Part shown: positions 22,275-53,702 of the stretch, one piece after another
Layout: each line of letters opens with the position of its first letter
Position numbering within the stretch: the stretch's first letter is position 1
Source of the DNA: Botryllus schlosseri
Taxonomy: Eukaryota
NCBI GenBank assembly: GCA_051294905.1
Contig: CM119377.1
Location: 4,402,001 to 4,466,000, forward strand
DNA length: 64,000 nt
Reading direction: 5' to 3'
Position numbers and translations under genes: made by a program
Notes under the pieces: model-generated
Database searches by the model: none
Told to the model about the DNA's origin: nothing
The model's input: only the letters and a program-made list of their open reading frames with translations

Positions 22275-23424
22275 TCAGCAGCCATCGGTTCTGACAACGT
22301 CCGTATTAAACCCAAATCCAGATAGAATACTGGAAAACGAACTGAAAAAATTGAACGAGAAGCTCTCAGTAGTGGTTTTAACCTTTTTACATGCTTTGGT
22401 TGTTGTGAAGGGAATGCACGTCGGACGAATCCATTTGCCATTTATCTTCTTTGGTCGCACCGTCTTACAACTAAAAGTGGATTTTGTTGTTTTGGGTTTA
22501 TCCGTAGTTTTCGGACGGTTCCACTTGGGTTTCTTGGGTTTAAGAGTAGTGGGGACCGGCTTCTTTGATGGTTTGGTCCATTTAGGTTTCACCGTCTGCT
22601 TTTTAGGCTTCCATGTTGGCTTGGCTGGTTTCACCGTCGGTTTTTTGGGCTTCCATGCTGGCTTTGACGCGGTTGGTTTAGCGGGTTTCACCGTCGTTTT
22701 TTTGGGCTTCCATGCTGGCTTTGACGCAGTTGGTTTGGCGGGTTTCACCGTCGGTTTTTTGGGCTTCCATGCTGGCTTTGATGCTGTTGGTTTGGCGGGT
22801 TTCACCTTCGGTTTTTTCGGCTTCCATACTGGTTTTGATGTTGTTGGTTTGGTCCATTTCGGCTTTGCAGTGGGTTTCGACGGCTTTCTCGCTTTCTTCG
22901 TTGTGGTCTTAGGCGTCCATCTCGGTTTTTGTGTGGGTTTTGTAGCGCTTTCAGTGGAAGGAATACAGTCATCTAACAACTGCAGTTTCACGACATTTTT
23001 CTTCTTCGTTGGCGATTTGGCCGCGAATCTCGCAGGTATCGCCTGCGTCGGATATCCAGCTGAAGTATTTCAAGTTTAAGTTTCATGAAACTGAATCGCC
23101 AAAAGCAAGCTACTTACCCCCTCTCATGATGCAAGCGCATTCATGTAGACAGCAATGCGCGTACTTCCGCAATCCACAGTCTTCTGGAGCGACGATTGCC
23201 TTGGTATTGAAATCGTAGCATGGTTGAACTTGATTCTCAAATCCAGTTTCTGAAAAGCGTGCGTGAATTTTGTTAACAAAGGAAGTCGGAATATATAATA
23301 ATATAGGCCACTTACTTGGAATGCATTCCAATTTATTTAACCGTTGCGATAACTGCCACGATGTTTGACAGTTCGTCACTTCAAATAACGCCACAACCAG
23401 AGCCACTACTGTAATCCGCAACAT
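22275..23424 (-). CDS. Secreted Cys-rich / Lys-Trp-Thr-Pro repeat protein, paralog A (341 aa; exons 23424-23316, 23249-23118, 23059-22275)
   Basis: Hydrophobic leader MLRITVVALVVALFEVTNC followed by QTSWQL; GT-AG phase-1 introns of 66 and 58 nt; the spliced frame is open and aligns motif-for-motif with B-E; ends FSSILSGFGFN..DGC*. Confidence 0.9.
22600..22850 (-). repeat. 57-bp coding tandem repeat (19 aa, KPAKPTASKPAWKPKKPTV) in paralog A
   Basis: Three near-identical units plus degenerate flanking units, visible in both DNA and translation. Confidence 0.9.
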
Positions 23425-26400
23425 GTTGACTAGAGATCTGTAAATAACGAATATATTGTAGTATATATATAGATTGAACACTGTATACTTTCACTGGACT
23501 CATTTTCTTACTCCTATTTGAATAAAATGAGATTTCATGTCACTCATACCCGAAATAAAACCTAACTATCACAAGACAAGCAAACGCGGGTGGTTTTATA
23601 CTGCCGGTTATCGTAAATTCCCATCGCGTTTTAGCAAAAAACGAGATCTCATGTCGTGAGAAAAAATGTGATATTACCAACTTATGACGATATCGGCTAC
23701 TTTTGGACCGGCGTATCATACGATTCGTTTGATAGCTTGGAGGCTTTGTGTGAATTATGCGAATGTACGCTAAAAACCAGTGATTTACACTGCTCGACAA
23801 TATATATGTGGATATGCGGGCGACGAATATTTCGTTTTTTTTTTGTCTTGTTGCTGTTTAGGCTAAGTTAAACCTGCAGAGCCGCGGAATTTCTTAAATC
23901 TGGAAAGCTGATTTATGGTTATGAACCGGAATATTGGAATTGAGCACTTGACAGTCGGTAATGGAGATACCACCGAGTCCCCAAATACCATGTCCTACGT
24001 TCCACCGATTCGATTGTAGAATCATGTTGAATACGGTTCTTCAATCCAGCACCATCGTCGTACAAAATATGGTGTTCCGACACGTCAGAGACACGACGGA
24101 TGGCATATATATATCGTGGCTGTAGCCTATTTCCGGGAGGATTGGTCTCCGATAAGCGAGCACGCAACCTCCACAATACTCTGGTGGTTATAGAAAATTT
24201 CCAACGACAAACTTTGATCCGAATTTTCGTTTCACATTCATAAAACTTGGTGATTTTGTATTCCATACGATTAGCAGAGAAAGGCTCACTGTCCGAAAAC
24301 GATCTATTCTATATAACAGGTGCCTACTTGTCTCTTAGCAGGGACTTAAAACTACGGTGTTACAAATAAATCTGACTGTGGTGAAATAACGTTCTCCAGG
24401 ACTCATAAATACGACACCTGCAATAAAAGAAACAAGTTGCTGTAGGCCTACAGGTAACTAAAGAATACATTTCAGTCCAAACCGATCGATACATCTGTTG
24501 AGGGATTATCAGATATAGAATAATGTCCTCTAACTTTAGCTGTTGACATACTGTACGGTGGATTGAGCATAAGACCTTGGTACCTCCATCGTACATATGT
24601 CTAACTCGGCTGATGTTTGTGATATTCGTGTTGTTTTCCGACAACAATGGTCATTTTCAACTGACCGATATAGACTTTATTCTGATTTCGTTGCTGATAA
24701 CTTGTAGCGCATCCCACTTCTAGCCAGACACCGCTTACGCGGATCAGATGGCGAGGAGAAGCCTAGATAAACTCCCAAAACGTTAGAAATGGATTCTCTC
24801 TAACTGCTGCATTGGAATTTATTCAAACGATTACGGCTGAGATATTGCAACCTGGCATACAGTTTCCCAGATACAGCCATAGGATGTATTAAAATGGATT
24901 ATATCATATATATGCCGTATTTCCCCATCATTTAAAAGTAAATTTCTTCATCATTCTCACCGCACACTGTAAGTGTAGGCTACCCTGTTTCTGTAACAAC
25001 TGCAGGGTCTCGAAGTGAAGGCACCAGTCTTCGAAACAACAATTATCACTCTATATGAGTGATACAAAGTATTGAGAATAGCACCCATGATTAATAGTTT
25101 CCACTCGATTTCATTACAATTATAAGTCGGCGAGATGATTCGATTTAAGTAAACGTTTCATGATCGAAATTTCCGAAAGACATGTGCAATTTTAATAGTT
25201 TAACAGGAGGAATACACTATTTTCTTACTTCGGCCGTTTTGTTTATCTCATTCGGAAGAAAGGCTCGGTAGATACTGTAATCAGAAGCACATTTCCACAC
25301 AGCAATTTGAAAGAGAATGATCATTTGTATGCACCGAAACTAACGTGAAATGACCGTACTAAAAGTATACGTGAAGGGTAACAAATATGTTAGTATAGTA
25401 TACATAATTACAGCTGTAACTCACGGCGAAATGGGCATGGCCGAGTATTGACATTTCGGGGTGCCAAAAAAGTTCCTGGTCCGATGTTCTCGAATTTTTC
25501 GAAGAATTGCTTTTATTTGAAAAATCAAAACTAGCGTGTAATTGATAACAATCCAACTAACAAATAGGCCTATACTGAATAATATTCTCTACGATATCAA
25601 TTACCGAAAAGGCAGCAGCAACCGCATCAGCAGCATTGACAAAACCAACAGAATAATAATGGGAATTTCAGATGTGTATTCCGACTTTTCAACAAAGCGT
25701 TTAACAAAGCGAGAAAAGGTATGAGAAATATTATATCACTCGAGGAATTATCGCAGCTATTGTTTACCACTCGCACGACACCGGTGACCATGTGGATATA
25801 TATTTTGCACAGCATGGCACCAAGTCAGAATATTGAAGAATTTCAGGACATTTCCTAATGTACGTGCTTAGTCGCATGACAAAAGTGAAGGAAAAGAATT
25901 ATTACATCCGCATTATGGCATAACCAGAAATGAACATCCAGCATTACGGTTTCTTCCTGAAAGTTCGTAATCGCTATGACTAATATCCTGTAATTATCCG
26001 TTAGCTAAAGATCGTATCACGGTTTTGAGTACCAGTATGTTTTTATTGAAAGCATTTGTGTGGTGAACTTCTTCTCTTACATAATAAACTTGATACCCCA
26101 ACTTAAATCATTTAGATCTCGCGCACACTGACGATTTATTTCGGATTCGATCACGTTATATGTAAGATAGGGTTCGAAATAGTACTACAGGACTATACCC
26201 AGCGTCACAATTCCTTGATATCCCTGTTTTAGAAATCTTGATGGCATTTATAAGTACAAACTACCGTTAACATCAAAATATTTGGGTATATACAAAACGG
26301 AAGCAAGTATAGATGCCAGTTGATTATATTTTACTTACACGACAAATACATACTTGTTGTTGTTATGTTTCCAATGTATTTATGGAGAGAATAACAATAA

Positions 26401-27220
26401 CAAACTTAAAAGGTCTATTTACAACACGCAGGATTAAAAATGCTTTGTCGACGCGGAGATGATAGACTGGTTAACAAAATTCGACGCAGACATACAATAC
26501 TGAATGTAGATACTTTCTCTTCTAATATCTAACGAAGAATGTGTTGTGCAATATTTATCAGCTCGTAAATATTCATTATTCATTGATAATGGAATTGCGA
26601 ACGTGAAACGTTTTTTCGTTTCCTATAAAACGCACTTAGTTTCAGTTCCAGATATCATGATATAATGGGTCAAGCAAACACGCACACACACAAAAAAAAA
26701 ACAGAACACAAATCAGTGAATATGCAAAATTAAGGGGGGTAAAGATACAACCATTTTGACAGCGAATTGATTTTATAGAGAGTTGACGACATGTGATGTT
26801 CCGAGTCCAGGTGACTGTGGTTTGCAGTGCTTCAACCACCCAAAAAAGACACCCTTAATTTCGCAGGTAGCGATTCCGATCCATCGCAATCTCCCCAACA
26901 CTCCATAGCACATGGATCCTTAACTTGGGGTCCGTGGATATATTGGGGGCCCGCTGACTATTTCTAAGGGGTCCATGAAAGGCCTGGGGTGCACTACAGT
27001 TTCCTTGATAATATCTGACATTATTTTTGACTGTTAGCCGCCAAGTACCTTTGTAGGCAACAATTAGACCGGATGGTATTGTAAGGCTATGATTAGGGCT
27101 GGGAGGAAGTGATGACATTTGTTTAGTCACCAGCTTCCCAAATTCCAAGGTTAGGGACCCAAGCAATCACCTAATAAACTTTTAAGGGTCCGCGCTAGAA
27201 AAAGGTAAAGAAACACTACT

Positions 27221-28496
27221 CTAACAGTCATTGTCATTCGTGTTACTGACGAGGTTGAATCCGAAGTGCGAGAAAATGCTCGCGAACGATGAATGGAAAG
27301 CGGAGGAGGAAGCCGTCGTTGTACATCTTTTTTTCTTTGGCTTTTGGGTCGGCGTAAATTTACGTTTCCGTGCCGGTTTAGCGGTAGTTGTTGTTTTGGG
27401 AGCCGATGCCGGTTTCCATTTTCGTTTGTGCTCCTGCTTGTTGTCGTCCCCTGCATCAGTAACTTTCGAAGTTTTCCCAACAAGTTCGCCAGTAGTCGAC
27501 GCCTTCTTTTCCGACGTTATCGGAATACAACCCTCGATTACTTCTATCTCATCAGAATCGGATGATGTCTCCGGTCGTTTGAATCGTTTCGGAATCTCAG
27601 GAACTTCGTGCCCAGCTGTGAACGCAAGACAGTTTCAAAATCGGTCTATAGAGGCGCAGAGCACACTTGTACAAACTACCGGATCTTCAAAATGCGCAAG
27701 CAGAACTAGATTCAGTAGTAATCACTTTTCAAAGCTAGCGACTAAAACTAGAACTACTCACTTTTAAACCTCTCAATTAGAACTAGAACCAATGACCTAC
27801 ATAAAAATTCGCAACGAACCAACCCAGACACGAATAACCAAACAGATTCAATACCGAAGCAACTTATTAATTTTTAACTTATCGGAATCGGATCGGCGTT
27901 CCACATGAACATCAGTACAGGTTTGAAACGGGAGGGGTTTCGACCCCCAAACCCCCCGGCTACTCCACTGTTAGTATAGTGATACCTGCTATGGCTGCAA
28001 GAACATAACGAAACAGAACGCCTGTATCATGATTCAAGCCAAACGACGACGTGTGTTTTCGAGTTATTCGACACCTAATTATTTTTAAGTGTACAACTAG
28101 AATTATAGGACCGGTGGTTAGTTGACCGTCAATTAACTGGATTGATAGTTTGTATACATTTGTACAAGTCTGACGCAGAGCGATAGTGGTCTCACCGCCT
28201 CTCATGATGCACCGGCAATTATATATGCAGCAGTGCTGGTTCTTCATGAGGTCACAGTCTGACGGCGGTACCAGTTTCTTGGTGATAAAATTGTAGCACG
28301 GTTCGATATGCTCCTCATGTCCAATCTCTGAAGAAAAACATATTAGAGAATGGTAAGACTCACATATTATTCATTTATACTGACTTGGAGTGCATTGCAT
28401 ATCTTTAAACTTTTTACTCAATTGCCATGCCGTTTGACCGTGGGAGATCTCAATCAGCAGCCCAGTCGCAATGACTACAAATGTTAATATCTCCAT
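27221..28496 (-). CDS. Paralog B (212 aa; exons 28496-28385, 28327-28196, 27615-27221)
   Basis: MEILTFVVIATGLLIEISHG-QTAWQLSKKFKDMQCTP | KIGHEEHIEPCYNF..DC..HCCIYNCRCIMRG | AGHEVPEIPKRF..EGC..KRC..FASIFSHFGFN..NDC*. Introns of 57 nt (GTCAGT donor) and 580 nt. Not shown as one ORF in the supplied track. Confidence 0.88.
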
Positions 28497-30357
28497 TACG
28501 TTCAACAGACTCGAAATATGACTTTCTGTGCACGGAAACCCAAAAGGAATTTAGATCGTCGTATAAAAGTGCAAGCTTATAGATTATTATCTTCATCATT
28601 TCCGTATTCCGACTACGCAGACCGGAATCAGTAGTTAAGGGCATGCTCAATCTGTTCTTTTTTCTTCGCTACTTCTGGAGTTAACTACATGGAAGAAGTA
28701 AACGGAAATGGAATCCGGTAAATATAAGATTATTGTTAATGAAAATCACGAGTGCAGCTGGCAGGTTCTGAATGCTTTGAGAATTAGTACATTTAATGAC
28801 TTGACAATTGACTCGAAAAGTCGTCTCCGAGTCACGAATGATACCATATTTCTCATATGCCGTGTCGGGCAAGTCATTCATAAAACGTGACTTTAGTCAT
28901 CTTTGTGTGTATAGGTGCTTTTATTTGAAAGTGCAGTATTTCATAAATAATCCTTGCACTGCCGCAGACCTTTGGGGTGACGCTTAAAATTGCGTATAAC
29001 ATTTCCTTTGCTATCTAGATCTATTGAGCATCGATAATAATTCGGGTGGAGTGAAACCGTCTCAAAATGGATGGAGTCGTCCTACGTCATAAGTCAATGC
29101 TCGATGCAAGTCATGGATTGTTTTTCAGGGATAAACACTGTTTTGTCAACAAACATTAAATTTTCGAATCATCAAGCTATACTATACCAAAAGATTTCGT
29201 TAGCGATAATTCAAATCCAAAAAGCGCTTGCTATTTCATATAACATACATAAAAGCCGTTGTCCGAAGTGGGCATCGATACTGATTCCTATTATTAGTTC
29301 AAGCACGTCATGACTGCATTTGACATTTACATTCTATTGACGGGACATTCACGATTCATGGCTAGTTTTTATGAGCGATTTATTTTCTTCTGATAGTTAC
29401 ACAAGGTAGGCCTAAGCGGTACCCTATAGTTTGTTGCAGAAGGCCTATATAATTCTCAAATTCATATGTTTACGATCAAAGGCGAGTCGCATACGATTCT
29501 ATCGCCGTGCTGTGTCGAATTGTCACGCTCATTAAATCATATCTGATGAGCGGAAGCAAACTACATTTCTGATCATAATACGGCATATGAGGTGTTGACT
29601 GTTGCAACTACTTCTACTACCCCCCCCCCACCCCCACCCGCCGGTGCCTGAGGAATGTATGCCTTCCTTTCCTGCCTACACTCGTAAAATAACCTGGCGT
29701 TACCGGCCCATGCACCGCAAAGGCGGCATTTGTATGGGATAATATATTTCAAAGACGCACTGAGACGGAGGCCGTGAGCATGCACGATTCCCGTACCGCA
29801 CTTGTTATTATATTCATTCAAAAACCGGATGCTTCTTTATTGATTCGTAACAACAATATTGAGAGAAGGCAAAATACTAAAAAGTTTTGTGCATTATGAT
29901 AAGGATTCGAGGTCAGAGCTAACGGATATCGTAATATAAATAAAAGCATTCAACTCAATATGGAACCAATGACCCAGTCTGTGTGCTGGGGGTTATTTGC
30001 TGCAGTATAGACCGAAGTAATTTCTGAGGACAACGACCATTTATGAACGACAATCCAATTTCCTGTGCGGTCAAGTAATATCGACAAATTTACTTTGATC
30101 GATCGAGTAACAGCGATTCTTATTCAGCATGCCGCCTGTCGGCAATTGACTGCAGCGGAAAATAATTGAATGAAGAATTCCTGATTTATGAAGCGCACAT
30201 TCATTCAAGTCTTCCCGACTGGATTATTCCAGAAGCATCCAAGCGTATGGTGACCGGTCAATCGTATCTTAGAGACAATGGCTGCTATACAGTATACGTG
30301 ATATATCGATTCGGTATGGCTTTAATCAGAATGTTACGTTGTCAAGCTTGATAACAT

Positions 30358-30814
30358 TAGGCTTACCATACGTCCTCTTTTAAGAGGATTTGTCCTCTTT
30401 TTTGGCTTTTTTGAAAGTGTCCTCGGAGGACGGCCTTTTGTCCTCTTTTTTGAGATTTTGTCCTCTTTTTTGAAAATTTAGGTCAGATTTAGAGCAAATT
30501 GCGAGTGATATGCCGTAAATTAGCACAGAAGTGACGCTCCGGAGGGTATTTCGGAGCGAAAAACGCTATATTGAGCTCCGAGCGGAGAGATGACCTTTTT
30601 TTTTAGTCATCCACCTAGCAATGCGCAGAAAAAAACGGTATTTTGAGCTCTGAGCGCGAAGTGATGACCTTTTTTTTTATTTTTTTATTTTTTAGTCAAC
30701 CGGTCACAAAGTGGGAAAAATTCACCGGTTTTTGAGAATTCTACTCCAGTTTTGCAAGTCTCAAATTTCTGAAAAAGTGTCCTCTTTTTAGATTTCCAAA
30801 ATATGGTAAGCCTA
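30358..30814. mobile_element. hAT MITE (Blackjack-like ends), 457 bp
   Basis: TIRs TAGGCTTACCATA / TATGGTAAGCCTA; TSD GATAACAT; GTCCTCTTTT subterminal repeats; diverged relative at about 44613-44973. Confidence 0.93.
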
Positions 30815-36830: not shown

Positions 36831-37834
36831 TTAACAATCGGTCGCTTCCACTCCGGCGTTGAATCCGAACTGACTGAACATGTCGGAAAACTGCGAGAAA
36901 ATATTAAGTGAAGAACCCGAGTTGTTGCACGGCTTGGTGGTCGTCCTTTTGGTTGTCGGTGCGGGCGTTGGTTTCCAGGCCCTAGTGTTCTGCCTTCGAG
37001 GTTTCACCCACGGTTTCTTGGTCGTCGTTTTCGGAGTCCATTTTCTCGCTGGTCTCGACGGGGTTTTCGGAGTTGTCTTTGGCGCCCATTTTCGCGCCGG
37101 TTTCTTCGTGACTTTCCCGTTTCTGTTTGTCTTCGGCTGCCACTTTCGTCTGCGTTTTGGCGCGGTTTTTTTAGATGGAGTTGGGTTTTCCTCGCCCGGA
37201 GTGCATCCTTCTAACAGCGTCACCGCGACGGTCGCTGATTTCTTGATAGGTGATGGTTTGACAAATCGCTTCGGAATATCAGGCACATCATATCCGGCTA
37301 TAAATGAAATAGCGTTGAGAGACATGCTTATCCTAACATTGGATAACTAGAAAACTGTTATCTTGTCCAAATTCGATTAGAATTAGAATTACTGAATTGG
37401 CAAAAAATTGGAGATGGAATCCAATTTCACAAATTAGATTAGAAATAGATTATCGGCATTCGTTCTCATTAGTTTATCTAATATGAAAACTAGAATTATC
37501 CTTGTCGAAGTCTGGTCTGTACATTACCTCCTCGCATTACGCATGCGCAGTCGTGAATGCAGCAATGCTGATATTTCAGTAACGTACAGTCATCTGGAGA
37601 AACGAGCTTCTTGGTGACAAAATCGTAGCAGGGTCGGACGCTGTGTTCGTGTCCAGTTTCTTAAAGAGTCACAAATCGCGTTACATTTCCCGCCGACGGA
37701 AATAGACAATTTATCAGAAACTTACTTGGAACACATTCCAGTTTTTTAAACTTTTTTCCCAACTGCCACGCTGTCTGACCGTGCGACAACTGCAGTGCGG
37801 AATAAAGGACGATTGCAACCAAAGTAAATTTCAT
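36831..37834 (-). CDS. Paralog C (235 aa; exons 37834-37726, 37659-37528, 37297-36831)
   Basis: MKFTLVAIVLYSALQLSHG-QTAWQLGKKFKKLECVP | KTGHEHSVRPCYDF..CCIHDCACVMRG | AGYDVPDIPKRF..EGC..KWxPK repeats..KPC..FSQFGFN..TDC*. GT-AG introns of 66 and 230 nt. Confidence 0.9.
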
Positions 37835-39263: not shown

Positions 39264-41311
39264 ACTTAGTTGTGCGGGGATACTGCAAATTCCTTTTGAA
39301 TTACGACTGATTTGACGATTACTGCGACGATTTACCAACCTCTCATAGGGCGACAGTATATATGCGATGTATATCATACTTAGCTACAATTTCAATAATC
39401 GGAACCTAATCGACATACAGGTTACGGGATATACCTAATACATCTGGTCTGTTCTCGAATGTAGTGCATTCAAGGCGACTTGCACCATTGCACCAGGTAA
39501 GCCCTTATATACAATATTTCGGAATGTTGCATTGACAAATTCGTGCTAGATTGCGATCGTGCAAAATGTCGGTGTGCAGCTTAGGTGTCGTTTCCATATC
39601 TACTTATGATTTAATGGGTTACATAATAGGACTTTTGTCGTCATGAGCGTGAAACCCAATACCGATTGCGTCACGACAGTCTGCAATGAAATGTCACTGC
39701 AGATTTTGTACTAGTCAACAGAGAATCCAATTGTTATAAGTATTTGTGATTAACTGGAGATAGTTTACACGGTGAAGTATATTGGCTGTTTGAAGGGTTT
39801 TTTACGCTTTAATTTGCAGATGGGATTGAAAGTTCGTAAACTCTACAATACGTTAATCATATGCCGCATTGCCGCGTCTGTGAACAGTGCTTGGAGTGTT
39901 TTTTGCACGACATTTATCTCGATGACGCACTAGATTCCATTTATATACATTCCTATAGGCTTACTTGAGTAATGCCGCTGTCAAATTATATAGTTTGTTC
40001 TCTGTCATATCATACGGGTTATCTTGAATTAAGAATTCTTTTTTACGAGGTTCCCGTTAAATTACACCAATAAATAGATGTATTTTGTCAATTGTGCTAC
40101 ACAGGGTCCCGTCGGCTATGATACATTTAGGAGATTGGATGTTCGTCAAATGTACTGTATATCAGAGATGTCAAACTCAATTTGGGCGGATCCAATCCTT
40201 TTGATCACTTGCGGGCTGAACCATTCAGAATATACCAGATTCATCAGATATTCTTAACCTTTACAAACCCGTGGAAAACCGGTTAAAAATCACTGTTCTA
40301 GATAAATCCATACCTTCTCTCAGTGGGATACCTCATCATAAAAACCATTCATAATACGAAATATTTGAAGAGTTTCTTGGAGGTACAGAACTTCACTATA
40401 CAATTGAATAGTATATTCATATTGAAATAAACCCGAATATTTTCGGCTGACACTCGTAAGGGGTAATCGTCAGCAACTAGCAGAGAATTGGAAAGAACAT
40501 TGTATATCAACAATCGTATCACAAAATACCACGTCTCCAGCACGGAATTTCGAATGAGAGAGCGTTCAATGTACTATTTTTAGGTGGTACACGAAGTCCT
40601 TTTGTTGACAGAGTTTGGGTTGGTGTATTTTGATAAAAGTCAAAATATCACTGATCATATTGGGGCTCTATTCTAGGTACTCCATTTATTCTAGTCTCGC
40701 CTATTATGGAATTGGCAAACATAAAATGATTGGCCGCTTGAATACAGTCATTAACCACTAAAAAGTACAGACCAACGTCCTAGCCTACACTGCATGGTCA
40801 CGACAAGCAATTTGCATATCAATGCTCCCTTTGTTTCAGTCGTGATGCGACTAGGGTTGCATTAAAAACAAAAATCAATTTAAAACAGACATGTTTAAAA
40901 CAGGGCCCTTGTCTAAAACATGTTTTTTTACTCCTTTTTTTTTAAAGTCATGACGTCACGAATATTCATTTGTGACGTCGTAGTGGATTGACATTCACCA
41001 TTGAAAATATAGGGTAAACATAGCTCCTTTGACGAAATAGGCTTCCAACCCCTGTCATATACGGACCAAAAATATCTTTAACCATGGACTACCTACATCG
41101 TCATGCAGCATTTTAACGGTCGGTGGTCATCATCATCAGGACATTCATTCCGTACCAATGATCTATAGCAGTGGTTCTCAAGCTTTTTCACTGTGGGAGC
41201 CATTTTATGAACCTCAACTCTGTCGGGAGCCGCATGATGGCACGAATAACGTAATTTATTGAGAATAGAAAAATATCATCAAAAATGGTATCAACGAAAT
41301 GGTGTACGGCT

Positions 41312-41422
41312 AAAATAGCGACGGCCTTAATAGCGACGGCCAAAACACCGACTGGCCACAACAGCGACGGCCATAACAGCGACGGCCAAAACCGCGATTG
41401 GCTCAAACAGCGACGGCCAAAA
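41312..41422. repeat. Minisatellite of ~15-bp AGCGACGGCC units inside the Buster element
   Basis: Five AGCGACGGCC cores plus two variants. Confidence 0.8.
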
Positions 41423-41593
41423 CAAATACGACAATTTCCCCAGACGACACTGTGACAGCGGGCACTCCCCATACGGACAACTTCCGAAACGACGTTACCC
41501 AGCCACGTCCCTTCACCGATGGTATACCGAGGTATACCCTTCACCGTTGAAGCCGATTGCGGATGATTTACAATTTACATTCTTCCAGATAGT

Positions 41594-41737: not shown

Positions 41738-41743
41738 TGCAAC

Positions 41744-43549
41744 TTAGTGCGAAACTTGAAATTGAATTTGATTTTTCACAAGTTTGTCATAACGAGGTTT
41801 CATCGTGGAGGAAGCTGTGCACAAGAGCTGTTTCAGATGACGATCAGTCAATCGGTTGCGATATTTGCTTTTGATCCTCACTAATTTGCTGAAAAGGGCT
41901 TCACATACATAGGTTGAACCGAACATGCAGGCATTCTTCGATGCGTTAGCTATCAGGTTGGGGTATTTTTCTTCAGGAACAGCACCCCAAAATTCAAGGA
42001 GTCCATTGCTTTGAAACAACAGTCGCAATTCTATATCGGACTGCAAGTCCAGCAGTTCCATCTGAAAAATATCAGGGGCAGTGGCGGCATCTACTGCCAT
42101 TGGGTTTGAAAATATATTCATCAGGGGTACGGAATGATGCATTCCCTCTATTCGACGTTTAAACCCGTCAATCAAGGTACTAATAACCTGGTCATATGTT
42201 TTGAATGATCCATTCTGTCGGTGGTTTGAAAGCGTTACAAAATGTGTCGTAACACCCTCCTCTAGGTGCTTTCTCCAAAGACACAATTTCTCAATGAAAC
42301 CAGACACTGTCCCGTACCAGGCGTGACAGAGCTTGTTATTTCCTTGTAAGTTCCGATTTAGTGACGACAGGTGTGAGGTAATATCCACCATGAACGCCAA
42401 GTCAGCAACCCAGTGTTCGTTTCCCAACTGAGGGATGTCTTTCTTTCCTTCGACAAATATTTTAATCTCAGGAAGTAGCGCGTAAAATCTTTTGAGGCAT
42501 GCAGCTCGGCTTAGCCATCGTACAGCGGTGAACATGATCAAGTCTCCATGGTCAGCATCAATATCGGTGAGAAAAGCCTTGAATTTTCGATGGTTAAGTG
42601 CGTTTGCTCGAATCCAATTTACGGTCGATATTACTATATCTGTCACATTGGACATCTTTAATGATTTAGCAACAAGACTTTCCTGGTGTATAATGCAGTG
42701 TTGCCAAGTCACAGCGTCAAGATTCTGTTCAGCACGCCATTTGTTGACGAGTCCTTGAAGACCTAGATTTTTGCCGAGCATTGCTGGGCAGCCATCTGTC
42801 GCCAATGAATATAATTTCGATGGGTCTAAATGCGCTTCTTGAAGAGTAGCATGAAATTCACGAAACATGTCGGTTCCCTTCGTTGTGCCATGAATAGATC
42901 GCAAAGTAAGAAACTCCTCGCAAATCTTGAAATCTGGCATGACTCCCCGGATGAATACAGCTAATTGCTCTATGTCGGTAATGTCGTTAGTGCTGTCAAG
43001 AGCAAGCGAGTAGTAAGAAAAATCTTGCGACTTGTGAATAAGTTGCTCATGCAGATCTTGGGATATGCAATCGACACGACGCGTTACTGTATCATTGCTA
43101 AGCTGCAATTTTTTAGCTTTCTGCTGAATGGCAGGAGAACAATTGTCTTCGGTAAACAAAACAATAGCCTGCTTCGTAATTTCGCCATCAGAATATGGCT
43201 TCATATTGCTGGCCAATAGATGACTGATCTTATATGATGTTATTGTTACCTCTTCGGGTTCTTTTTTTTTTAAAAACATTTTTCCTTGTTTGCTACGCTC
43301 TGCTTTCAGACATTCTAACTTCCGTTTCCTTGATTCACCTTGATAGACGTCGTATTTTCCCGCATGTGTTTTATAATGCCTCTTAACGTTGAAAGATTTT
43401 ACACCGTTTATTATTATAGGGCACAGAAGGCATTTCGCTTTGCCGTTTTCCTCAATTTGAAAATACGCCTCTTCCCATTCACTTTGAAAGGCCCGATTTT
43501 CTTGCACAAGGGTGCGAGATTTCTTTGCAGGTTGATCTGAACCTGACAT
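41744..43549 (-). CDS. Buster/Charlie (SPIN, GTF2IRD2-like) hAT transposase, about 601 aa
   Basis: Likely start MSGSDQPAKK (the track ORF extends upstream to 43735); motifs CLLC..RHY..H, SLALDSTND, ATDGCPAM, HCIIHQ, VRWLSR, FGSTYVCEALFS, KSKYRNRL, QVSH*; no stops or frameshifts. Confidence 0.95.
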   Translation of the reverse strand: MSGSDQPAKKSRTLVQENRAFQSEWEEAYFQIEENGKAKCLLCPIIINGVKSFNVKRHYKTHAGKYDVYQGESRKRKLECLKAERSKQGKMFLKKKEPEEVTITSYKISHLLASNMKPYSDGEITKQAIVLFTEDNCSPAIQQKAKKLQLSNDTVTRRVDCISQDLHEQLIHKSQDFSYYSLALDSTNDITDIEQLAVFIRGVMPDFKICEEFLTLRSIHGTTKGTDMFREFHATLQEAHLDPSKLYSLATDGCPAMLGKNLGLQGLVNKWRAEQNLDAVTWQHCIIHQESLVAKSLKMSNVTDIVISTVNWIRANALNHRKFKAFLTDIDADHGDLIMFTAVRWLSRAACLKRFYALLPEIKIFVEGKKDIPQLGNEHWVADLAFMVDITSHLSSLNRNLQGNNKLCHAWYGTVSGFIEKLCLWRKHLEEGVTTHFVTLSNHRQNGSFKTYDQVISTLIDGFKRRIEGMHHSVPLMNIFSNPMAVDAATAPDIFQMELLDLQSDIELRLLFQSNGLLEFWGAVPEEKYPNLIANASKNACMFGSTYVCEALFSKLVRIKSKYRNRLTDRHLKQLLCTASSTMKPRYDKLVKNQIQFQVSH

Positions 43550-44612
43550 TATCATTGAACCAAAGTCTCCGATATTTTCTAACGCTATCAAGATCAAAGC
43601 AAAGAGTAAGAAAATAAAGTACCTGCAGTTACCCCAAACGTTGATTGTCTTATTGACCGAGTCTCTTGTCACCCGTATTCTAATATGAGCCGCCGTCTCG
43701 AGCGAAATAAACTTCGCCCGTCTCATTACAGACACCTGATTAGGCTTAGGTCAGACGGTCAGAGCCTTCAGTAAAGCAGTAAAGGTTCGGATTTAAAGCC
43801 TACCGAAATTACTATCGGTAATGTTACGTCACAACCCGTACAACTTGTATTACGTAGGATTCTATTGTGATCAGGGAATGACCTTCGCGTCAGTAAACGT
43901 GAACATAAACGTACATTTGTTGTGTTGAAGGCGCGATTTATTTATGATCATGAATAATTAGAATTTCCGTAGAAGCATCAATGATTTCACATCGTTAGTG
44001 AGAGCCGCACGGAGAGCAGTCGAGAGCCGCATGCGGCTCGGAGAGCCGCGGTTGAGAATCACTGATCTATAGCTACGCACTGTAGCGGCTGAACCGACTA
44101 TTTCGAGGCTCCAAACATCCCATATCGTATACGTCGGCTATATCGAGTGGTAATCGTATACGTAGGCTCATACAACGTGTGTTTTGGAAAGTATTTACAC
44201 AATTATGGCGTAATTATACATGTTAAAAAACATAATTTTTTTAAAAAGGCTTCTGCTTAAAACACTTTGTCATTTGCTTTAAATGCAACCCTAGATGCGA
44301 CGTTAGCCCGCGTAAGCGTCGCGGGGAATACAAGCGATTCAACTGTAATTGCGGGCTCTTCGAATGAGATTCATTATTATTAAATCACCATTCACGTATT
44401 CACGGCATAGAACATGTTGCTGTACCTTCGTACTGAACCTGCTAACTGCACTAAAGGAAGTGGGAGACGTGAAGAAATGTTTTATACCGCAATTGATATA
44501 GGCCTATTCTTTGAAAGCGAACAATTGATGGACAGAATAGAGACATTGAAAGGGCGGGGCCTTTTGAGTCAGAAGCTGTATAACAGTGTGACCAAATATA
44601 TTGTTGGTATAT

Positions 44613-45272: not shown

Positions 45273-45600
45273 TGACCAGATAGCATGATGGTTAAGCGTT
45301 CGGCTTCTTGATCGCTAGGTCGTGGGTTCTATTCCCGGCCGGGTCAGACCAAAGACCTGATTAGTAACACTGGTATCCATGACTTCCCCGCTTGGCGCTC
45401 ATGCATTTCTGGGATACCATGGAGGGGTGGTGCAAGACTTAGAAAGCCTTACAAGACTATATCTGCAGCTTCCTTGTCCAGCGGCATATGCACATCATGC
45501 ACTCATGATATGCATATGCGCAATATGCGCATATCGTGTGTATGTATATCATTAGTAGGTGTTTATGCCGCAAAAAAATAAACTACGTCCTTTCCTTTCC
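45273..45600 (+). mobile_element. tRNA-derived SINE, copy 5
   Basis: Same head, body and tacgtcctttcctttcct tail as the other copies. Confidence 0.92.
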
Positions 45601-46311
45601 TATGTAGGAAACAAAAAAGTAGGCCCATATGATTCTTCCAAAAAAGCCTTCTTGAATACTCCTTATAAGTACTAGTACTATACGTTACGTCTGATGGCGT
45701 AGAAAAGTGTTCGACATTTGCTGTTCTGAGATTATTAACTTAGTAGTACTTTTGAAAGTTCGTTAACTCATACTTGTTCCGCAGGCCGTGTGTTTAACAT
45801 CCCTGATCCTGCATTCACAAATAAGGAGATCCATGCCTCCAGAGATAAAATGAATCACTCAGTTTAAAACTCGATCAATTTCAACTTAAGTTGTGTGGTT
45901 AATAGCAGTAGTTGTAATTTTGCTTCTCCTCTGGTGACATAATTGGAAGCGATCATAATCTAGTTCCAGCATCTTCTTTATTAGATTATATATGAAGGAG
46001 GCTGCTACAGACAAGCATTGACCGTTGGTTCATATGCAAAGTAAGATCACTTGCTTGGTACGAATTTTATTGAATATCTTCGCAAGACAGATGATAATGA
46101 GGTAGTAAGAAAATATACAATAACAATATATACTTTACATCTATATGGTGGAAATGCTGTGATAAATCGAGCTGTGATTATTGATCTATGTATATTGAAA
46201 TAGGAAATTTCAATTAAATATTGTGCTATGTCATAGCGAGTGAACACGATATTGTTCCGATAAACATTTTAGTAAGAGAGCAAAACGAGTTTACACAATG
46301 ATATGATACTA

Positions 46312-47275
46312 TCAACAGTCATTGCTGCTATCGACCCCTGTGTTGAATCCGAATTGACTGAATATGCTTGAAAATGAAGAAAAGAAACCGAAAGAAGAGG
46401 CCGAATTATTACAGGCTTTCTTGGTCGTTGATTGGGTGGTTTTGGGAGAACGGTGCTTCCATGGTTTGACTGTGGTTTTTTGAGTAGTCGTGGTCGTTTT
46501 CCGTGTCCATTTGTTTGTTTTCTGCGCTATTGCTTTGGTTGTTTTCGGAGACCATTTCCACACGCGTTTCGTTGTTTTCTGTGATGTTGCTCGGGTGGTT
46601 TTCGGAGACCATTTCCGCGCGCGTTTCGTCGTTGTACTCGGAGCCTTGGTAGTGCTTTTCTGCACTGCTGTCGATGTTCGCCTCCAAGCTAGCTTCGGCG
46701 ACAATGTCAAGTCAGGCACGGTTGTCGGCAATATGGTTGAGTCCTCGACATCTTCTTTCGAAGGAACACAGCCTTCTAATAATTCGGCCTTAGCGGCAGC
46801 GCTCTTCATCACCGACTTTTTACGCATGAATCGCTTGGGAATCACGGGTGATGGATATCCCGCTGCAAATGAATTATGAAATAAAAAAATATTCAAGTAG
46901 GTAAAATCTGAAGATCTTACCCCCTCTCATTACGCATGCGCACTCGTGGAGGCAACAGTGTTGGTATTTTGGCAGATTACAGTCTTTCGGGGAAACCAAA
47001 TCCTTTGTCATGAAATCGTAGCATGGTTGAACTTTATCTTCAAATCCTATTTCTACGAGGAATAGTAGCCATTGTTGAAAACGATATGGACAGTAACAAC
47101 AAATATTATTATTGACAAACAATATGAAATACTGGATGCATAAAATATTATCAAGACACTTACTGGGAGCACATTGTAGCGCTTTAAACTTTTTTCCTAA
47201 CTGCCATGGTGTCTGACAATTGGTCACCTCCGACAGTGCAGCAACAGCAACAGCAGCAATCATTATATTCATCAT
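46312..47275 (-). CDS. Paralog D (264 aa; exons 47275-47164, 47052-46921, 46862-46312)
   Basis: MMNIMIAAVAVAALSEVTNC-QTPWQLGKKFKALQCAP | KIGFEDKVQPCYDF..CCLHECACVMRG | AGYPSPVIPKRF..EGC..KWSPKTT repeats..KAC..FGFFSSFSSIFSQFGFN..NDC*. Introns of 111 and 58 nt. Confidence 0.92.
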
Positions 47276-49235
47276 ATTTATCGCTAATCTGAAGTATAAC
47301 AATTCAGTGTTTTGGTGAACTTGTAGTCATAAATACCAATCATCACCCTCATTATATACAACGAAAAATAATTGTTTATTCTTTCGAAATTAAAATGTAG
47401 GGCGTTTTTTAATCTTGAGCATTACTCAATCTTAGTTATGAGACTTAATCTTAAATATTATTAAAAGGTATCAATTTGGGCGTCGCCACAGCACGTCGAC
47501 TTTAACTGCTAGTACCGTCATACTACCCAAAAGGCATGCAGGCGTCTCAATGTAATTTCCAAAACAATATGAATGTTATAGGCCTGCCGAACATTGAAAC
47601 ACATCTTCATTTCTGACCAGAAGTGTATTAAACACTGGTAACATCATTTGCAGGAGGGTCCTTATATACAATTTTTTCAATGATTCAATTACTTGATTCT
47701 GTCACTGCTGATTGTTATCGCACCGTATCTGTACGCGTATGTGTTGCGTCATTTAAAAGTGTCACGATGTCAAGGCTGCCAGAATAGCTCATCTACGTCA
47801 AAATTGCGCGGTGACACTGCCCGCAAATGAATTATAGTTAAGACTGCGAATTTCTGTTCAACAAACAACTCAAAGTGATAATACAATGCGGTATTCCAAC
47901 ACGCTGATTGTACCGCGATAATTTTCACCTCTTAACCCGGTGTATTTGCGTCATGCGTATGGGAATCTGGCTGGTAAGTTATAATTAGTATAGCATGCGC
48001 GAAAATGTGAAATAGTAGCAATAATTCCGGTTCTAGCAGGATGGAAGATCGTAACCTCGACATGCTCGCATCGATATGATATGATCTAAGCAACATGGTT
48101 GAAAATCAAAAAATCAAATAGAGGAATGTCAAAATCCGCATGGGCATAATATACCTAGCCACAATGATGGAGCGCAACTATTTATAAAATCCACAGAAAC
48201 TATGAAGAAGGTCTACAGATATTGTACAGTACGTGAATCCTTGAGGTGAACTCTACAATCATTGAAATACAAAGTCATGGGATATCACTTTCATCATATC
48301 TTAGGTAGAAAGCCAAATATACGTGACAGTGAAATACCTATTTACTTATTTACATTTGTATTTTACACATCGCGCAGGTTATAACAAATATATAAGGAAT
48401 AAAGGATGGCTATAAAACACATATGGACTGGACAAAATATGGCAGCGATGCAAGTTGTAGTTAATTACCAATGATTAATCAACACGCATCGCAGCAACGT
48501 ATCACGCGGCAGACCAGAAAACAACAACCTACCAAATGTCACGTTTCACGTAGGTCTGTCTATTTAGTGTCACGAGAGTACGTTACGTCCTTTCGGTGAT
48601 CAAGAAACGAACCTGTTGTGCTAGACAACTCGTCTCGCTACATAATGAGTCTATGAAGGAGAAATTAAAGTGGTAATATGATTCATATCTGTAATATAGT
48701 TCAATGTATTTAAAACGTTTCCGTAAAAACCGCACAACCAGTCCTCTCGCCTTCGAGCCCGTTCTGTCTATCGCGTGACAGGAGCGTCGGGAGCACACAC
48801 ATAATAATTACGTTAATCACAATCACAATATGCTATCCATAACGTCATAACATATACCACCCGATTGCTTACTCCAGTAGTTTTAAACCCTTACCAACTG
48901 GAGGTCGACCGATATTGATTTTTGCAGGCCGATACCGATACTGATTTCGACACACTCACGAGGCCGATAACCGATAACATAGGCCGATAGTAAGATGGAA
49001 GGAGCAGCGAGCCATTTCACAAAAATATTATATATTAGGCAATGTGGCACTTACACATGCCAGAGAAAGCTGAACAACAAACGAGCAAAACGTAATACAG
49101 AATGGCAGATCAGTCCAGTAGAGATAGATTGTAATGCAGGAAGAATAGTTTCTCTGCATAATCACCCAGTTAAAATATACTAGGTTATGGATGTTCAGAT
49201 CTGATTGCTTATTGTTACAAAGTCATGGTGTGATA

Positions 49236-50175
49236 GGGGAGATGTGGCACAGATGGATCAAAAATTGTTAAATGATCTTCAGCCGATAACGACAGATCTT
49301 CTGCTGGCTCAACACTTTGATATAAACTCTACCTACCGCACTTATATACATGATTATCCGCTTTTTCAAAGAATATTTATGAACGTTCAAAATTTGTAGC
49401 TGGAACGTATCATCGGTCCTCGCACGGTGGGTCGGAAGGAACACGACCTGGGGACCTATGAGGCTTACGCTCAAAAACTTAAATGTTCCAAATTTATTGC
49501 TGTGTCTAAGCTACAGCATGCCAAAAACGAATGTTTGGTCGCAACCGCCGAGAAAATAAAATAAATATAATAGCTTAAATGTAGTCATGAAATCCCGTTC
49601 CGATTTAAGCACAAACTTATAAATTTGAGGGTACATACACAAACACATTGCCCGTAAATCGAGATTTTGACTTCCAAGTAGCTCATTATAGCGGTAAAAC
49701 ATATAATTTTTATATACAGCGTCTATGTATGTAGCAGCGTTTCTGTTTCGCATGATTGGTTAGTCCAACTATATTGCTTGATTTGGCTATGGTATCATCG
49801 GCCTCATCTCCATAAATTTTGTAATTGAATTGGAAAAAGTCTACCCAAGGATGGTATTGAATGAAAAAATATGTGCCGTTATATAGCCTGGTACAAGCCC
49901 CACACTGCACAATAGAAATGATTGATGGTTTGTTCGTGTTGAAGGTTACAAAGAGAAATGAATGCGTCGATTGAAATTTATCTGGCACCCCTTAAAACAG
50001 AAGACATCAGCCAGTGACCCCATATCTCGTGCAGGTCGAAGTTTTTTGCGTGTGAGGAAAGACTCTGCCAGCATGCAATTGTAGACCATTTCACGGAGTG
50101 TAATCATGGGATTATCAGAGAGAACTTTTCAAGTATTTTTTCAGTCCCAGTGTCTCATCGGTACCACATCTCCCC
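49236..50175. mobile_element. MITE with TA target duplication, copy 2 (940 bp)
   Basis: TIRs GGGGAGATGTGG / CCACATCTCCCC with TA flanks; colinear with 4660-5620 throughout. Confidence 0.92.
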
Positions 50176-50401
50176 TACTTAAAACAATGAATATATTTTT
50201 CAATGCAAGGTAATTAATTAATTTTGCAAAACACTATACGACATTCAAAATATTAAAAGACGGTCATAAATTATATGCGACGTTGCAATGCAACCGCAAA
50301 ATCGACAGTATGTTGTAACATATTATTGTCAGTCAATAAGTCATTCAAATGGAATGGAACAATCTGACGACGATGTTCTAGTCCCGGACAATCCACTAGC
50401 A

Positions 50402-51669
50402 CAGTGGTTCTCAACCTTTTTGTCGTCGCGGACCCCTTTCGGACCATCACGGAGCTCGCGGACCCCCACGAAAAGTTTGGACAAAATTAGCTCAGCTATC
50501 GTGCAATCGTCATATGTCTGATGCAAGTGATAACTGTAGGCTCAGTGATAAACAGCAAAAACATGAATTTTCCTGAAAATAAAATCATACCATTCATGAC
50601 TTCTATTATTTCAAAGCGAATTCTGCAACTGAATTTCTTGAAATACGTGGTCGTGTCTTGAAAATCCGCGCCTTCGATTGGATATTAACGAGTGCCGAAA
50701 ATCCATTTCCACAAATATAGGTGGGGGCGAATGTAGCGATAACGCGTAACACTTCCGACGATACATTTGGGTATCATCGCAACAACTATGGCTAAGACGC
50801 TCAACGCTAACTATGACGCACTCCTCCGCTATGCACTCGGCATTCACCATCCGGAGCATATATCCACGAACGCATTGCGAGAACTCACAGGAACGGTCCC
50901 ATGCCGTCTGCTGGCAGCTGAACGACGCTTCCGCCTAATCGGCCATCTAGTGCGGCATCAAGACGAGCAACCAGCCGCCGCCATCATTAATCACATTCCC
51001 ACGGAGCCATGGCGCAGAGGTGGCTGGAATCGGAGAACATAGCGCTCGACAATGGAGACTGATCTAGCGCAACGCGGGCTGTCGCTTGAAGACGCCCACG
51101 ACCGCCCACGTTGCAGACGCTTAACACGAGCCCAAAACTGATTATCTCGATGTTCTTTTTGTCTGCTGTTTTCTTTTGCCCTTTTTTATTTTATCTAATT
51201 GAAAAGTCGCTATATATATATGGTCCCAAATTTGACAACCGATTTTTATTTAATGAACATATAACGTCAAGCCTGGTCATTTCCACCTATCAGCTTAATT
51301 TTATACTTCAGGAGAGACGGTATTTTTGTAAACATTTCGCAGTCCCTGTTCTTGACCTTACTTATCCAACTTTTTTTTACATAATCCCCAACAACACTTA
51401 TCTAAACAGCATAATGTTTGTATCAGTAGGCTATATTGTCAATTTAGCAATTAAAATGAGTCTGCACAGTAGAATATTTCTTCTCAGACGGCGGTTCTGT
51501 TGATGTGAAATCTGGAGCTTTACTATAGTAATGAAGCGAAACTGCCTCGTGATTTTCCGAATTTGAAAGAATACAAATTATGCTGACCACTATTTTGAGG
51601 CTTCGCGGACCCCCTGAAAATGCTTCGTGGACCCCCAGGGGTCCGCGGACCCCCGGTTGAGAACCACTG
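50402..51669. mobile_element. Non-autonomous Charlie/Buster element, 1268 bp
   Basis: TIRs CAGTGGTTCTCAACC / GGTTGAGAACCACTG; perfect TSD CACTAGCA; CGCGGACCCC subterminal repeats. Confidence 0.95.
50767..51141 (+). pseudogene. 3' end of an RTE-like LINE ORF inside the Charlie element
   Basis: KTLNANYDALLRYALGIHHPEHISTNALRELTG..RRFRLIGHLVRH..P..RRGGWNRRT*..ETDL..GL..DAHDRPRCRRL matches the post-RT C-terminus typical of RTE-clade LINEs; one in-frame stop. Confidence 0.75.
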
Positions 51670-52707
51670 CACTAGCATAATAGACCAGTGTTGAGGAATG
51701 AGATCTTCGTGCGTTCAACAGTGAATGCCGGCGCAGAGACACCGATTCGGTGAGGATGCCCCTGCAAAGAAAGAGAATTGGGAAGCACAAAAGCAATGAG
51801 TAGAAATGGTCCCATTTTGGTATTGATAAAGTTTTGTCTGCAGCATGGCTTGTTATCGGACTTCCTTTTTGACACCTCGCGCAATATCCTTACTATTCAA
51901 TGTATAGTGAAGCTAGGCTTATGCTTCTGTCGAGATTGCGAGCTACCATCCAGCTACGATCGGAACTATATTGCTGCTATTTGACGGTACCTTCGCGCTT
52001 GCTACTAATTATAACTTTCTTACCAAATTCCCGTGCGTGTGACGTAAACATACCTCGTCAAATGGTGTAAATTATCGCGGTAAAATCAGCGTGTGGGAAC
52101 AGCGCATTATTCGATCGCTTTGAGTTGTTTGTTGACTAGTAATTTTCAGTCTGGAGTAGAATCGACTAGTCTGCAGCATCGCGGCACAATTTTGACGTAG
52201 ATGAGCTATTCCGGCAGCCTTGGAATCGTGACACTTTAAAAGGACGCATCCCATATACGCACAGATACCATGCAATAACAATAAGAAATGAGAGATTCAA
52301 GTTATTAACCTATTGAAAATATTGTATATAAGGCCCCACTTGCAAAAGAACGTACCAGTGTTTCGGGCACTCCTGCTCAAAGCTGAATAGAAATAGGGCA
52401 GACGGAAAACGATCAGAGTGCTTTAGAACGCACATCGTGATATCGATTTTTTTTTAGGTTGTATCACAGTTCGTGCATTTTATGTCGACGTGATGTAGCA
52501 ACTGCTTAAATTGATACCATTCAATAATATTTAATACCAATGCCATAATCAAGATTGAGCCATGCTCAAAATTGGAATATCACCCTCACATTTTCATTTC
52601 GAAATAGCATACAACAATTTATCTTTGTGTATAATAAGGGTCAAGATAACTTGTTTATACGAATTCGTTAAAACATCAAATTGTTATACCTAAGATCAGC
52701 TATAAAC

Positions 52708-53702
52708 ATGACGAAAATAATATGTGTCGTGGTTGTTGCCGTTGCTGCACTGTCAGAGGGGACCAATGGTCAGACCGCATGGCAGTTGGGGAAAAAGTTC
52801 AAAGCGCTGCAATGTGCTCCCAGTAAGTGTCTCGATAATATATGATACATCCAGAAGTTTTTACTGAATTATCACCATTTGTCGCCTTTACCCTATTATC
52901 AAAAATAAATAATATTCGGTATTGTTGGTATTGTTATCATCGATTGCTGCTACTCCTCGTAGAAACGGGATTTGAAGATCAAGTTCAACCTTGCTACGAT
53001 TTCATCTCGAAGGAGTTGGTTTCTGCTAAAGAATGCAAGCTGCCTAAATACCAGCACTGTTGCCTCCACGAGTGCGCGTGCGTGATGAGAGGGGGTAGGT
53101 TCGCCACATTTTCCATACTTGAATATTTTTTATTTCATAGTTCATTTGCAGCGGGATATTTCTCACCCGTGATTCCCAAACGATTCATGCGTACAAAGTC
53201 GGCGAAGAAAAGCGCAGAAAACAAGACAGAATTATTAGAAGGGTGCGTACCTTCCAAAAGAGATGTGGCGGACCCTACAACAGTGCCGACTACTACAACC
53301 GACTCGACATTGTCGCCGAAGCTAGCTTGGAGACGGACAACGAAAGCAGTACAGGAAAGCACTTCCGAGGCTCCGAGTACAACAACGAAACGCGTGTGGA
53401 AATGGTCTCCGAAAACAACCCATGCAACATCACAGAAGACAACAAAACTCGTGCGGAAATGGTCACCAAAAACAACCAAAGCAACAGCACAGAAAACAAC
53501 GAAATGGACACGGAAAACGAAGACGACTACTCGGAAAACCACAGCCAAACCTACGTGGAAACGGCGTTCTCCCGAAACCGCCAAATCAACCACCAAGAAA
53601 CCCTGTAATAATTCGGGATCATCTTTCGGTTTCTTTTCTTCGTTTTCGAGCATATTCAGTCAATTCGGATTCAACACAGGAGTCGATACCAGTGACTGTT
53701 GA
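52708..53702 (+). CDS. Paralog E (265 aa; exons 52708-52822, 52963-53094, 53152-53702)
   Basis: MTKIICVVVVAVAALSEGTNG-QTAWQLGKKFKALQCAP | KTGFEDQVQPCYDF..CCLHECACVMRG | AGYFSPVIPKRF..EGC..KWSPKTT..KPC..FGFFSSFSSIFSQFGFNTGVDTSDC*. Introns of 140 and 57 nt. Confidence 0.92.

Follow-up and report, generated by a model that had tools for sequence, protein, structure and literature searches.

A tandem cluster of five genes for secreted proteins

A 64,000-nucleotide (nt) stretch of the genome of the sea squirt Botryllus schlosseri (assembly GCA_051294905.1, contig CM119377.1, positions 4,402,001 to 4,466,000 of the forward strand), hereafter called the window and numbered from its first letter, was found to carry a tandem cluster of five paralogous genes between positions 22275 and 53702. 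There is hardly any doubt that the five are functional and that they represent a taxon-restricted family of secreted, modular proteins whose Cys-rich head is uncatalogued. The window is gap-free eukaryotic DNA with a base composition of ~40% GC. The gene models were obtained by a splice-site search for an ATG followed by a signal-peptide exon containing Q(T/S)xWQL, a 132-nt exon 2 flanked by AG and GT, and an exon 3 extending to FGFN. This constrained search returned one coherent model per gene and reproduced the proposal of an earlier note, made from the letters of the window, that five intact three-exon genes with two phase-1 GT-AG introns and an exon 2 of 132 nt encode proteins of 212-341 amino acid residues (aa). 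All ten introns are of the GT-AG type, lie in phase 1 and measure 57-580 nt, and exon 2 has the same length in five of five genes. Six-frame motif scans of the window yielded five copies of every conserved element, and neither these scans nor tblastn detected further copies or pseudogenes of the family in the window.

Genes 1 to 4 (g1-g4) are arranged in tandem on the minus strand, and gene 5 (g5) lies on the plus strand, head-to-head with g4. The g1 gene (22275-23424, minus strand) is composed of exons 23424-23316, 23249-23118 and 23059-22275, separated by introns of 66 and 58 nt, and encodes 341 aa. The g2 gene (27221-28496, minus strand; exons 28496-28385, 28327-28196 and 27615-27221; introns of 57 and 580 nt) encodes 212 aa and diverges most from the others; its linker is the shortest and least basic of the five. 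The g3 gene (36831-37834, minus strand; exons 37834-37726, 37659-37528 and 37297-36831; introns of 66 and 230 nt) encodes 235 aa; starting at an in-frame ATG further upstream (37888) would lengthen the protein by 18 residues and bury its signal peptide, for which reason this ATG is probably unused. The g4 gene (46312-47275, minus strand; exons 47275-47164, 47052-46921 and 46862-46312; introns of 111 and 58 nt) encodes 264 aa, or 260-264 aa according to the choice among three adjacent ATGs. Its closest relative in the cluster, g5 (52708-53702, plus strand; exons 52708-52822, 52963-53094 and 53152-53702; introns of 140 and 57 nt), encodes 265 aa. Because intron 2 of g5 (53095-53151, 57 nt) has no in-frame stop, a single 286-aa open reading frame (ORF) spans exon 2, the intron and exon 3; retention of this intron would insert 19 residues without truncating the protein.

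Architecture and composition of the proteins

All the motifs listed in the earlier note, from the signal peptide to the terminal Cys, were present in the protein alignment. The common layout begins with a hydrophobic signal peptide, whose predicted cleavage probably leaves an N-terminal Gln, and continues with QTxWQL, the Cys pattern C-x12-C-x13-C-x7-CC-x3-C-x-C, RGAG(Y/H)..IP(K/A)RF and (E/D)(G/D)C; thereafter come a basic linker, one more Cys (three in g1) and a Phe/Ser segment running to FGFN, with Cys as the last residue. The conserved head comprises ~93 residues with 8 Cys. In the tail, a Phe/Ser-rich segment ending in GFGFN is enclosed by two Cys, the second of which is the C-terminal residue; in all members these two Cys lie 30-38 residues apart. 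The number of Cys per mature protein is 10, except for 12 in g1, and the isoelectric points (pI) range from 9.2 to 10.4. The IPKRF sequence is found in four of the five genes, g1 having IPARF. As the total number of Cys is even (10 or 12), with seven before the IPKRF site and three after it, at least one disulfide must join the head to the remainder of the protein or join molecules to one another.

The five linkers are composed of 25-33% Lys+Arg, 22-38% Thr+Ser and 8-22% Pro. Together they contain 27 Trp (one to nine each, with a single one in g2) and no Tyr, with at most one Phe in each, and the Trp residues stand in the context K-(P/R)-(K/A)-W-(K/T/S)-P-K-T. In g1, the linker includes a 57-nt (19-aa) tandem unit rich in K, P, T and W, present in 4.2 copies with 91% identity (22614-22852); a 57-nt repeat also occurs in 2.1 copies in the g4 linker and in about two copies in that of g5.

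Pairwise identities between the paralogues ranged over 44-83% in the head, 19-76% in the linker and 25-91% in the tail. For the young pair g4 and g5 (dS, synonymous divergence, of 0.42), the ratio of nonsynonymous to synonymous divergence (dN/dS) was lowest in the tail (0.07), followed by the head (0.16), and highest in the linker (0.38); these low values point to purifying selection on both genes, strongest at the two ends and relaxed in the linker. The linker evolves fast and varies in length and charge.

Relatives in Styela clava and other samples

In all, 1.84 billion representative proteins were searched exhaustively with HMMER, the profile consisting of the five 43-residue exon-2 peptides only. 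This search returned nine true matches and one spurious repeat protein. Seven of the nine are RefSeq proteins of Styela clava (E = 1.7e-17 to 3e-6), and the other two (E = 8.6e-21 and 2.2e-15) are ORFs reading through an intron in unannotated genomic contigs (Logan) of other samples. One contig ORF (P0001) is ~80% identical to g1. The second (P0003, on contig L001) has the same exon 1-2-3 layout as the cluster genes, and its linker opens with a run of nine Thr. After a cluster look-up and two further searches, with full-length and head-focused alignments, both of which returned Styela clava only, at least 16 loci were recognized in this species: ten on the 20.05-Mb chromosome, five on the 22.07-Mb chromosome and one on the 18.7-Mb chromosome. 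Members include LOC120340917, LOC120340883, LOC120341535, LOC120341102, LOC120340422, LOC120334349 and LOC120347699. They are named either 'uncharacterized protein' or bear earlier automatic, repeat-driven names ('proteoglycan 4-like', 'repetitive proline-rich cell wall protein 1-like').

The Styela clava homologues resemble the cluster proteins in having a signal peptide, an FQL helix, the Cys pattern, GAG..IP, EGC, a low-complexity linker and a Cys-bracketed GFGFN tail; across the members of the family the tail ends in G-F/M-G-F/L/M, with Cys at or near the C-terminus, and the head-focused alignment of the cluster and its relatives has 12 invariant columns. Two of the Styela clava loci (P0008 and P0013), when spliced, show three exons, a 132-nt exon 2 and phase-1 introns as in the cluster, and this shared structure argues that the gene pattern is not due to chance. 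Like the cluster, the homologues are arrayed in tandem, with at least four genes within 21 kb (OZ123525.1, 12815925-12837230). The region of this array (L002) also contains an unannotated tail-like tblastn match at 5252-5548 on the minus strand, which is probably a fragment or a pseudogene.

The heads of the Styela clava proteins are only ~35-53% identical to those of the cluster. Unlike the cluster linkers, theirs contain 0-1 Trp, and in one subfamily, which has two extra Cys in the head, they are acidic or neutral (linker pI 5.3-9.5). At the position of IPKRF, the homologues have sequences of the IPEEYKL, IPENFKL or IPQNYTL type, without a dibasic pair. The near-absence of Trp marks the Trp/Lys motif of the cluster as a lineage-specific elaboration; together with the acidic linkers, it indicates that the conserved and selected parts are the head and the tail rather than the Trp/Lys repeat. 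In the same way, IPARF in g1 and the IPEEYKL-type sites of Styela clava show that the KR of IPKRF is not a feature of the family. The variety of linkers (basic and Pro/Thr-rich, acidic or neutral, or opening with nine Thr) suggests a spacer or a mucin-type region rich in Pro, Thr and Ser, and not a sequence-specific module.

No match was obtained in Ciona, Phallusia, Oikopleura or non-tunicates with the exon-2 profile, which is short, so that very distant relatives could have escaped it. A word-indexed protein search with exon 3 of g4 gave no match, so that the cluster's own proteins are absent from the collection indexed. On the sequences searched, the family has so far been seen only in stolidobranch sea squirts. 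A published description of the family was not found in the literature searched, including by the Styela clava locus names, and its loci are not among the supplement listings of a Styela clava endostyle transcriptome paper. The database searches, proposed earlier as a check for a characterised family, thus returned uncharacterised relatives only. The family is unrecognised in the sense that it has no characterised relative, but it is not private to this genome, given the Styela clava RefSeq loci.

Domain searches

In keeping with the earlier note, which could not match the Cys spacing to WAP, insulin, defensin, EGF or chitin-binding type-2 domains, the head corresponded to no catalogued domain: searches of Pfam with six isolated head domains gave no match at E values up to 10, and searches of PDB sequences with cluster and head-focused profiles returned nothing credible. 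With the exon pieces and the full-length Styela clava proteins, Pfam gave low-complexity matches only (HC2 and Extensin_1, each to single Styela clava linkers). In the ESM Atlas, the neighbours of exon 2 were phage 'hypothetical' proteins, and the nearest language-model neighbours of the head domain were ShK-like, with a score of 0.79; both fell under the lead threshold.

Two resemblances of the head were followed up and rejected. The ShK/ShKT domain (PF01549) is likewise a small all-disulfide domain, often joined to mucin-like linkers. Its Cys spacing ends in C-x3-C-x2-C, unlike the CC-x3-C-x-C ending of the head; given this difference and the silence of the Pfam model to E = 10, an ShK identity was discarded. 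Rusticalin, an ascidian protein of Styela rustica, is likewise basic and secreted and has a Cys-rich region at its N-terminus; it was also judged unrelated, since it is built of Cx6Cx6-7Cx8Cx7CC repeats and has a peptidase-like C-terminal domain (PMC6339383).

Transcription and trans-splicing

Spliced RNA reads over the predicted junctions, which had been named as a check on expression, were found for g1, g2 and intron 1 of g5. The two g1 junctions (23059|23118 and 23249|23316) are covered by 107 and 102 raw reads, respectively, in RNA run X22 and also occur in contigs of runs X1 and X2. Both g2 junctions (27615|28196 and 28327|28385) lie in one X2 contig, and that of g5 intron 1 (52822|52963) in one X1 contig. 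The spliced-RNA support accordingly covers both introns of g1 and g2 and intron 1 of g5, and the support for g3 and g4 consists of exon 3 only: no g4 junctions were seen in the four RNA runs examined, and exon 3 was found in RNA-run assemblies, where up to 0.78 (g4) and 0.79 (g3) of the sampled words were recovered.

Transcript levels differed strongly between samples. In X22, g1 accounted for 2,484 of 12.9 million records (~190 per million), against 22 of 7.4 million (~3 per million) in X24, a run of the same study, where it was thus ~65-fold lower; in X1, the depth of the g1 contig was very high. The RNA runs with g3 and those with g4 are largely different samples from the same studies. These separate g3 and g4 runs and the ~65-fold difference in g1 indicate that the paralogues are differentially regulated and not simply co-expressed, contrary to the co-expression assumed in the earlier note.

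The g1 mRNA carries the spliced leader of stolidobranch ascidians, which by itself places the genome in that group; the head identities of only ~35-53% set it apart from Styela clava. In X22, 131 reads leave the window at 23439 and pass into sequence foreign to it, which consists, on the mRNA strand, of template-switch-oligo letters followed by a spliced leader ending in GGAGTATTTGGTTGTATTA(AG). The leader of Ciona differs from that on g1. The trans-splice acceptor of g1 (23437-23439, minus strand) has its AG at 23439-23438, and the body of the mRNA begins at 23437, 13 nt upstream of the ATG. The g1 leader is the 25-nt one that PMC3795323 and its supplement give for Botryllus, Halocynthia, Boltenia, Herdmania, Polyandrocarpa and Styela plicata. 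One X2 contig reaches position 23494 upstream of g1 and probably represents the outron or an untrimmed precursor. For g2-g5, AG dinucleotides 13-29 nt upstream of the ATGs are candidate trans-splice acceptors.

Possible function of the family

We tentatively infer that the family consists of secreted, mucin-like proteins of an extracellular matrix or gel with two associative ends, a reading to which we attach slightly less than even confidence. It is suggested by the constrained ends, the spacer of variable length and charge, the high and sample-specific expression and the many paralogues. The two associative or cross-linking ends of each protein would be the head, rich in disulfides, and the tail, hydrophobic and bracketed by Cys, and the extended cationic linker between them would be a spacer capable of binding polyanions, for instance sulfated tunic glycans. 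The composition of the linker is predicted to suit both O-glycosylation and polyanion binding. The secreted proteins would probably be O-glycosylated and might be deposited in the tunic, in mucus, or in the egg or larval coat, paralogues with different linkers possibly serving different tissues or stages.

A similar overall layout is seen in the lubricin of vertebrates (proteoglycan 4, PRG4), which is also secreted and in which a long mucin-like repeat rich in Lys, Pro and Thr comes after a small N-terminal module with many Cys; it is because of this layout that one Styela clava member was automatically named 'proteoglycan 4-like' by NCBI. Somatomedin-B and hemopexin domains were, however, undetected by Pfam in the cluster and Styela clava proteins, and the likeness is one of composition, not of homology. 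Peritrophins and related mucin-type proteins share with the cluster a disulfide-rich end module, a Pro/Thr/Ser-rich spacer and membership of tandemly expanded secreted families, but differ in Cys spacing and in the CBM14 (chitin-binding type-2) domain, for which Pfam gave no match here. The Thr/Ser/Pro-rich composition of the linkers appears compatible with the densely O-glycosylated domain of gel-forming mucins; the VWD/C8/TIL assemblies and CTCK dimerisation knot of these mucins were not matched.

Several results weigh against a matrix or gel function. Pfam detected no VWD, C8/TIL, CTCK or trefoil domain, and hence no multimerisation domain of known gel formers. The tail of the cluster proteins is hydrophobic, but in four of the five genes it is not significantly amphipathic compared with shuffled sequence in a hydrophobic-moment test. 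Two AlphaFold2 runs on Styela clava homologues, for which the cluster exon translations were included as rows in the family alignments, produced poor models (mean predicted local distance difference test, pLDDT, of 52 and 43). Common to both are only an N-terminal helix over FQL, a small PCY..KKLV hairpin, a linker predicted to be disordered and a helical Phe-rich tail, to which the first model gives a pLDDT of ~74; the linker and the tail of that model count in favour of the matrix or gel reading. Finally, tandem, fast-diversifying and differentially expressed families of cationic secreted proteins are equally typical of immune effectors and of reproductive proteins.

Of these, cationic host defence is the alternative that survives best, although we regard it as unlikely. 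The Lys/Trp linker or the Cys head would bind or agglutinate microbes, or membrane-active fragments would be released, and pathogens would have driven the tandem diversification. A mature pI of 9.2-10.4, the tandem array, the fast-evolving middles and the sample-specific expression are all in line with such a role. Trp flanked by Lys or Arg is, moreover, common in antimicrobial peptides, and ascidian blood cells make Phe-rich peptides, e.g., styelins and clavanins. Those, however, are short prepropeptides with a cationic amphipathic helix of 23-32 residues, whereas the cluster proteins have 212-341 aa (190-320 residues when mature), with extended Pro/Thr-rich linkers instead of a compact amphipathic peptide. 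Their only predicted helix outside the head is that of the tail, which is neutral to acidic and not significantly amphipathic, and no similarity to styelin or clavanin precursors was found. Neither charge nor Trp is conserved in the family, the Styela clava linkers being almost without Trp and in one subfamily acidic or neutral, and the dibasic site is not conserved either.

A role as a wet adhesive or coacervating cement seems quite improbable and would concern the paralogues of this lineage only. Trp would replace Tyr/DOPA (3,4-dihydroxyphenylalanine) and engage in cation-pi interactions with Lys, in larval papillae, ampullae or the holdfast. With 27 Trp in a fixed context, no Tyr and at most one Phe per linker, the motif itself is real here. 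Its tandem units of 19 residues are reminiscent of mussel foot protein 1, with its short tandem Lys/Pro/Thr repeats containing one aromatic residue each. In that protein, however, the residue is Tyr/DOPA and the unit has 10 residues, and the cluster proteins differ further in their conserved Cys-rich ends and in a Trp that is not conserved among relatives. The motif is weak in g2 and absent from the Styela clava homologues (0-1 Trp per linker), i.e., lineage-specific; the earlier suggestion of Trp-based cohesion thus keeps its compositional basis but is weakened as a purpose of the family.

We assign a similarly low probability to reproductive or coat proteins, such as components of the vitelline coat, secretions of follicle or test cells, or glycoproteins interacting with sperm. 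Conserved ends with quickly changing repeat middles, taxon restriction, many paralogues and expression limited to some samples would all fit this picture, but Pfam detected no ZP, EGF or other known domain of ascidian coat proteins, and the dN/dS of g4 and g5 stays below 0.4 throughout, so that no positive selection is evident. The last alternative, a two-chain product or secreted ligand cut at the KR of IPKRF, with a disulfide-held 7-Cys head acting like a hormone, toxin or inhibitor, draws on the presence of IPKRF in four of five genes, on the seven Cys before and three after it, which require an inter-region disulfide, and on the head being the most constrained long region, but it is very unlikely in view of IPARF in g1 and the lack of a dibasic pair in every Styela clava homologue.

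Returning to secreted matrix or gel proteins, a bolder version can be formulated, which we consider speculative and rather unlikely. The head would be a new disulfide-rich fold that binds polysaccharides or associates with itself, and the family would be a stolidobranch innovation building the leathery tunic or the feeding mucus. Its members would act as telechelic 'sticker-spacer-sticker' glycoproteins, with cationic, and in this cluster Trp-studded, spacers cross-linking cellulose and sulfated glycans.

Surroundings of the cluster

Between g3 and g4, and outside the family, lies an intact hAT-family transposase ORF of 663 aa (41744-43735, minus strand; Pfam Dimer_Tnp_hAT, E = 2.7e-9). A second intact hAT-family ORF, of 632 aa, is found at 14127-16025 on the plus strand (Dimer_Tnp_hAT, E = 2.5e-11), and a C-terminal hAT fragment of 171 aa at 12410-12925 on the minus strand. 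The hAT elements may be active or recently active. Just downstream of the first ORF, a tandem repeat with periods of 15, 31 and 46 nt (41306-41424; ~8 copies of the 15-mer) may represent subterminal repeats of that element, and other repeats occur around and between the cluster genes.

The spacer between g4 and g5 (48600-51800) is matched by hundreds of short RNA-run contigs, with a summed depth of up to ~28,000 at position 50425 (X2). Variant letters are frequent in these contigs, and loose ends occur at either side; together with the depth, this suggests one or more high-copy transcribed repeats. Elsewhere, ~45 nt at 24727-24772 are matched by RNA contigs with a depth of up to ~1,650 (X2) and unrelated flanks, and probably correspond to a dispersed repeat or a motif of abundant transcripts. 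Neither the Rfam nor the tRNA scan of the window gave a match.

Significance

Tunicates are the closest living relatives of vertebrates and make materials, among them the cellulose tunic, mucus feeding nets and larval adhesives, whose proteins are mostly unknown. The present analysis provides gene models and a profile for a well-supported, highly expressed family that is limited to part of the ascidians and whose proteins combine a conserved tail with an uncatalogued Cys-rich domain. The novelty lies in the undescribed domain; the unnamed relatives were already in RefSeq, and the architecture of a Cys module joined to mucin-like repeats is a familiar one. Should the proteins prove to be an addition to the immune or reproductive families, they would extend the ascidian repertoire. 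If they form a structural or adhesive material, they would be relevant to biomaterials and to the evolution of taxon-restricted genes, and if the sticker-spacer-sticker model is true, they would constitute a previously undescribed class of animal extracellular material in which paralogues are tuned by the charge of their linkers.

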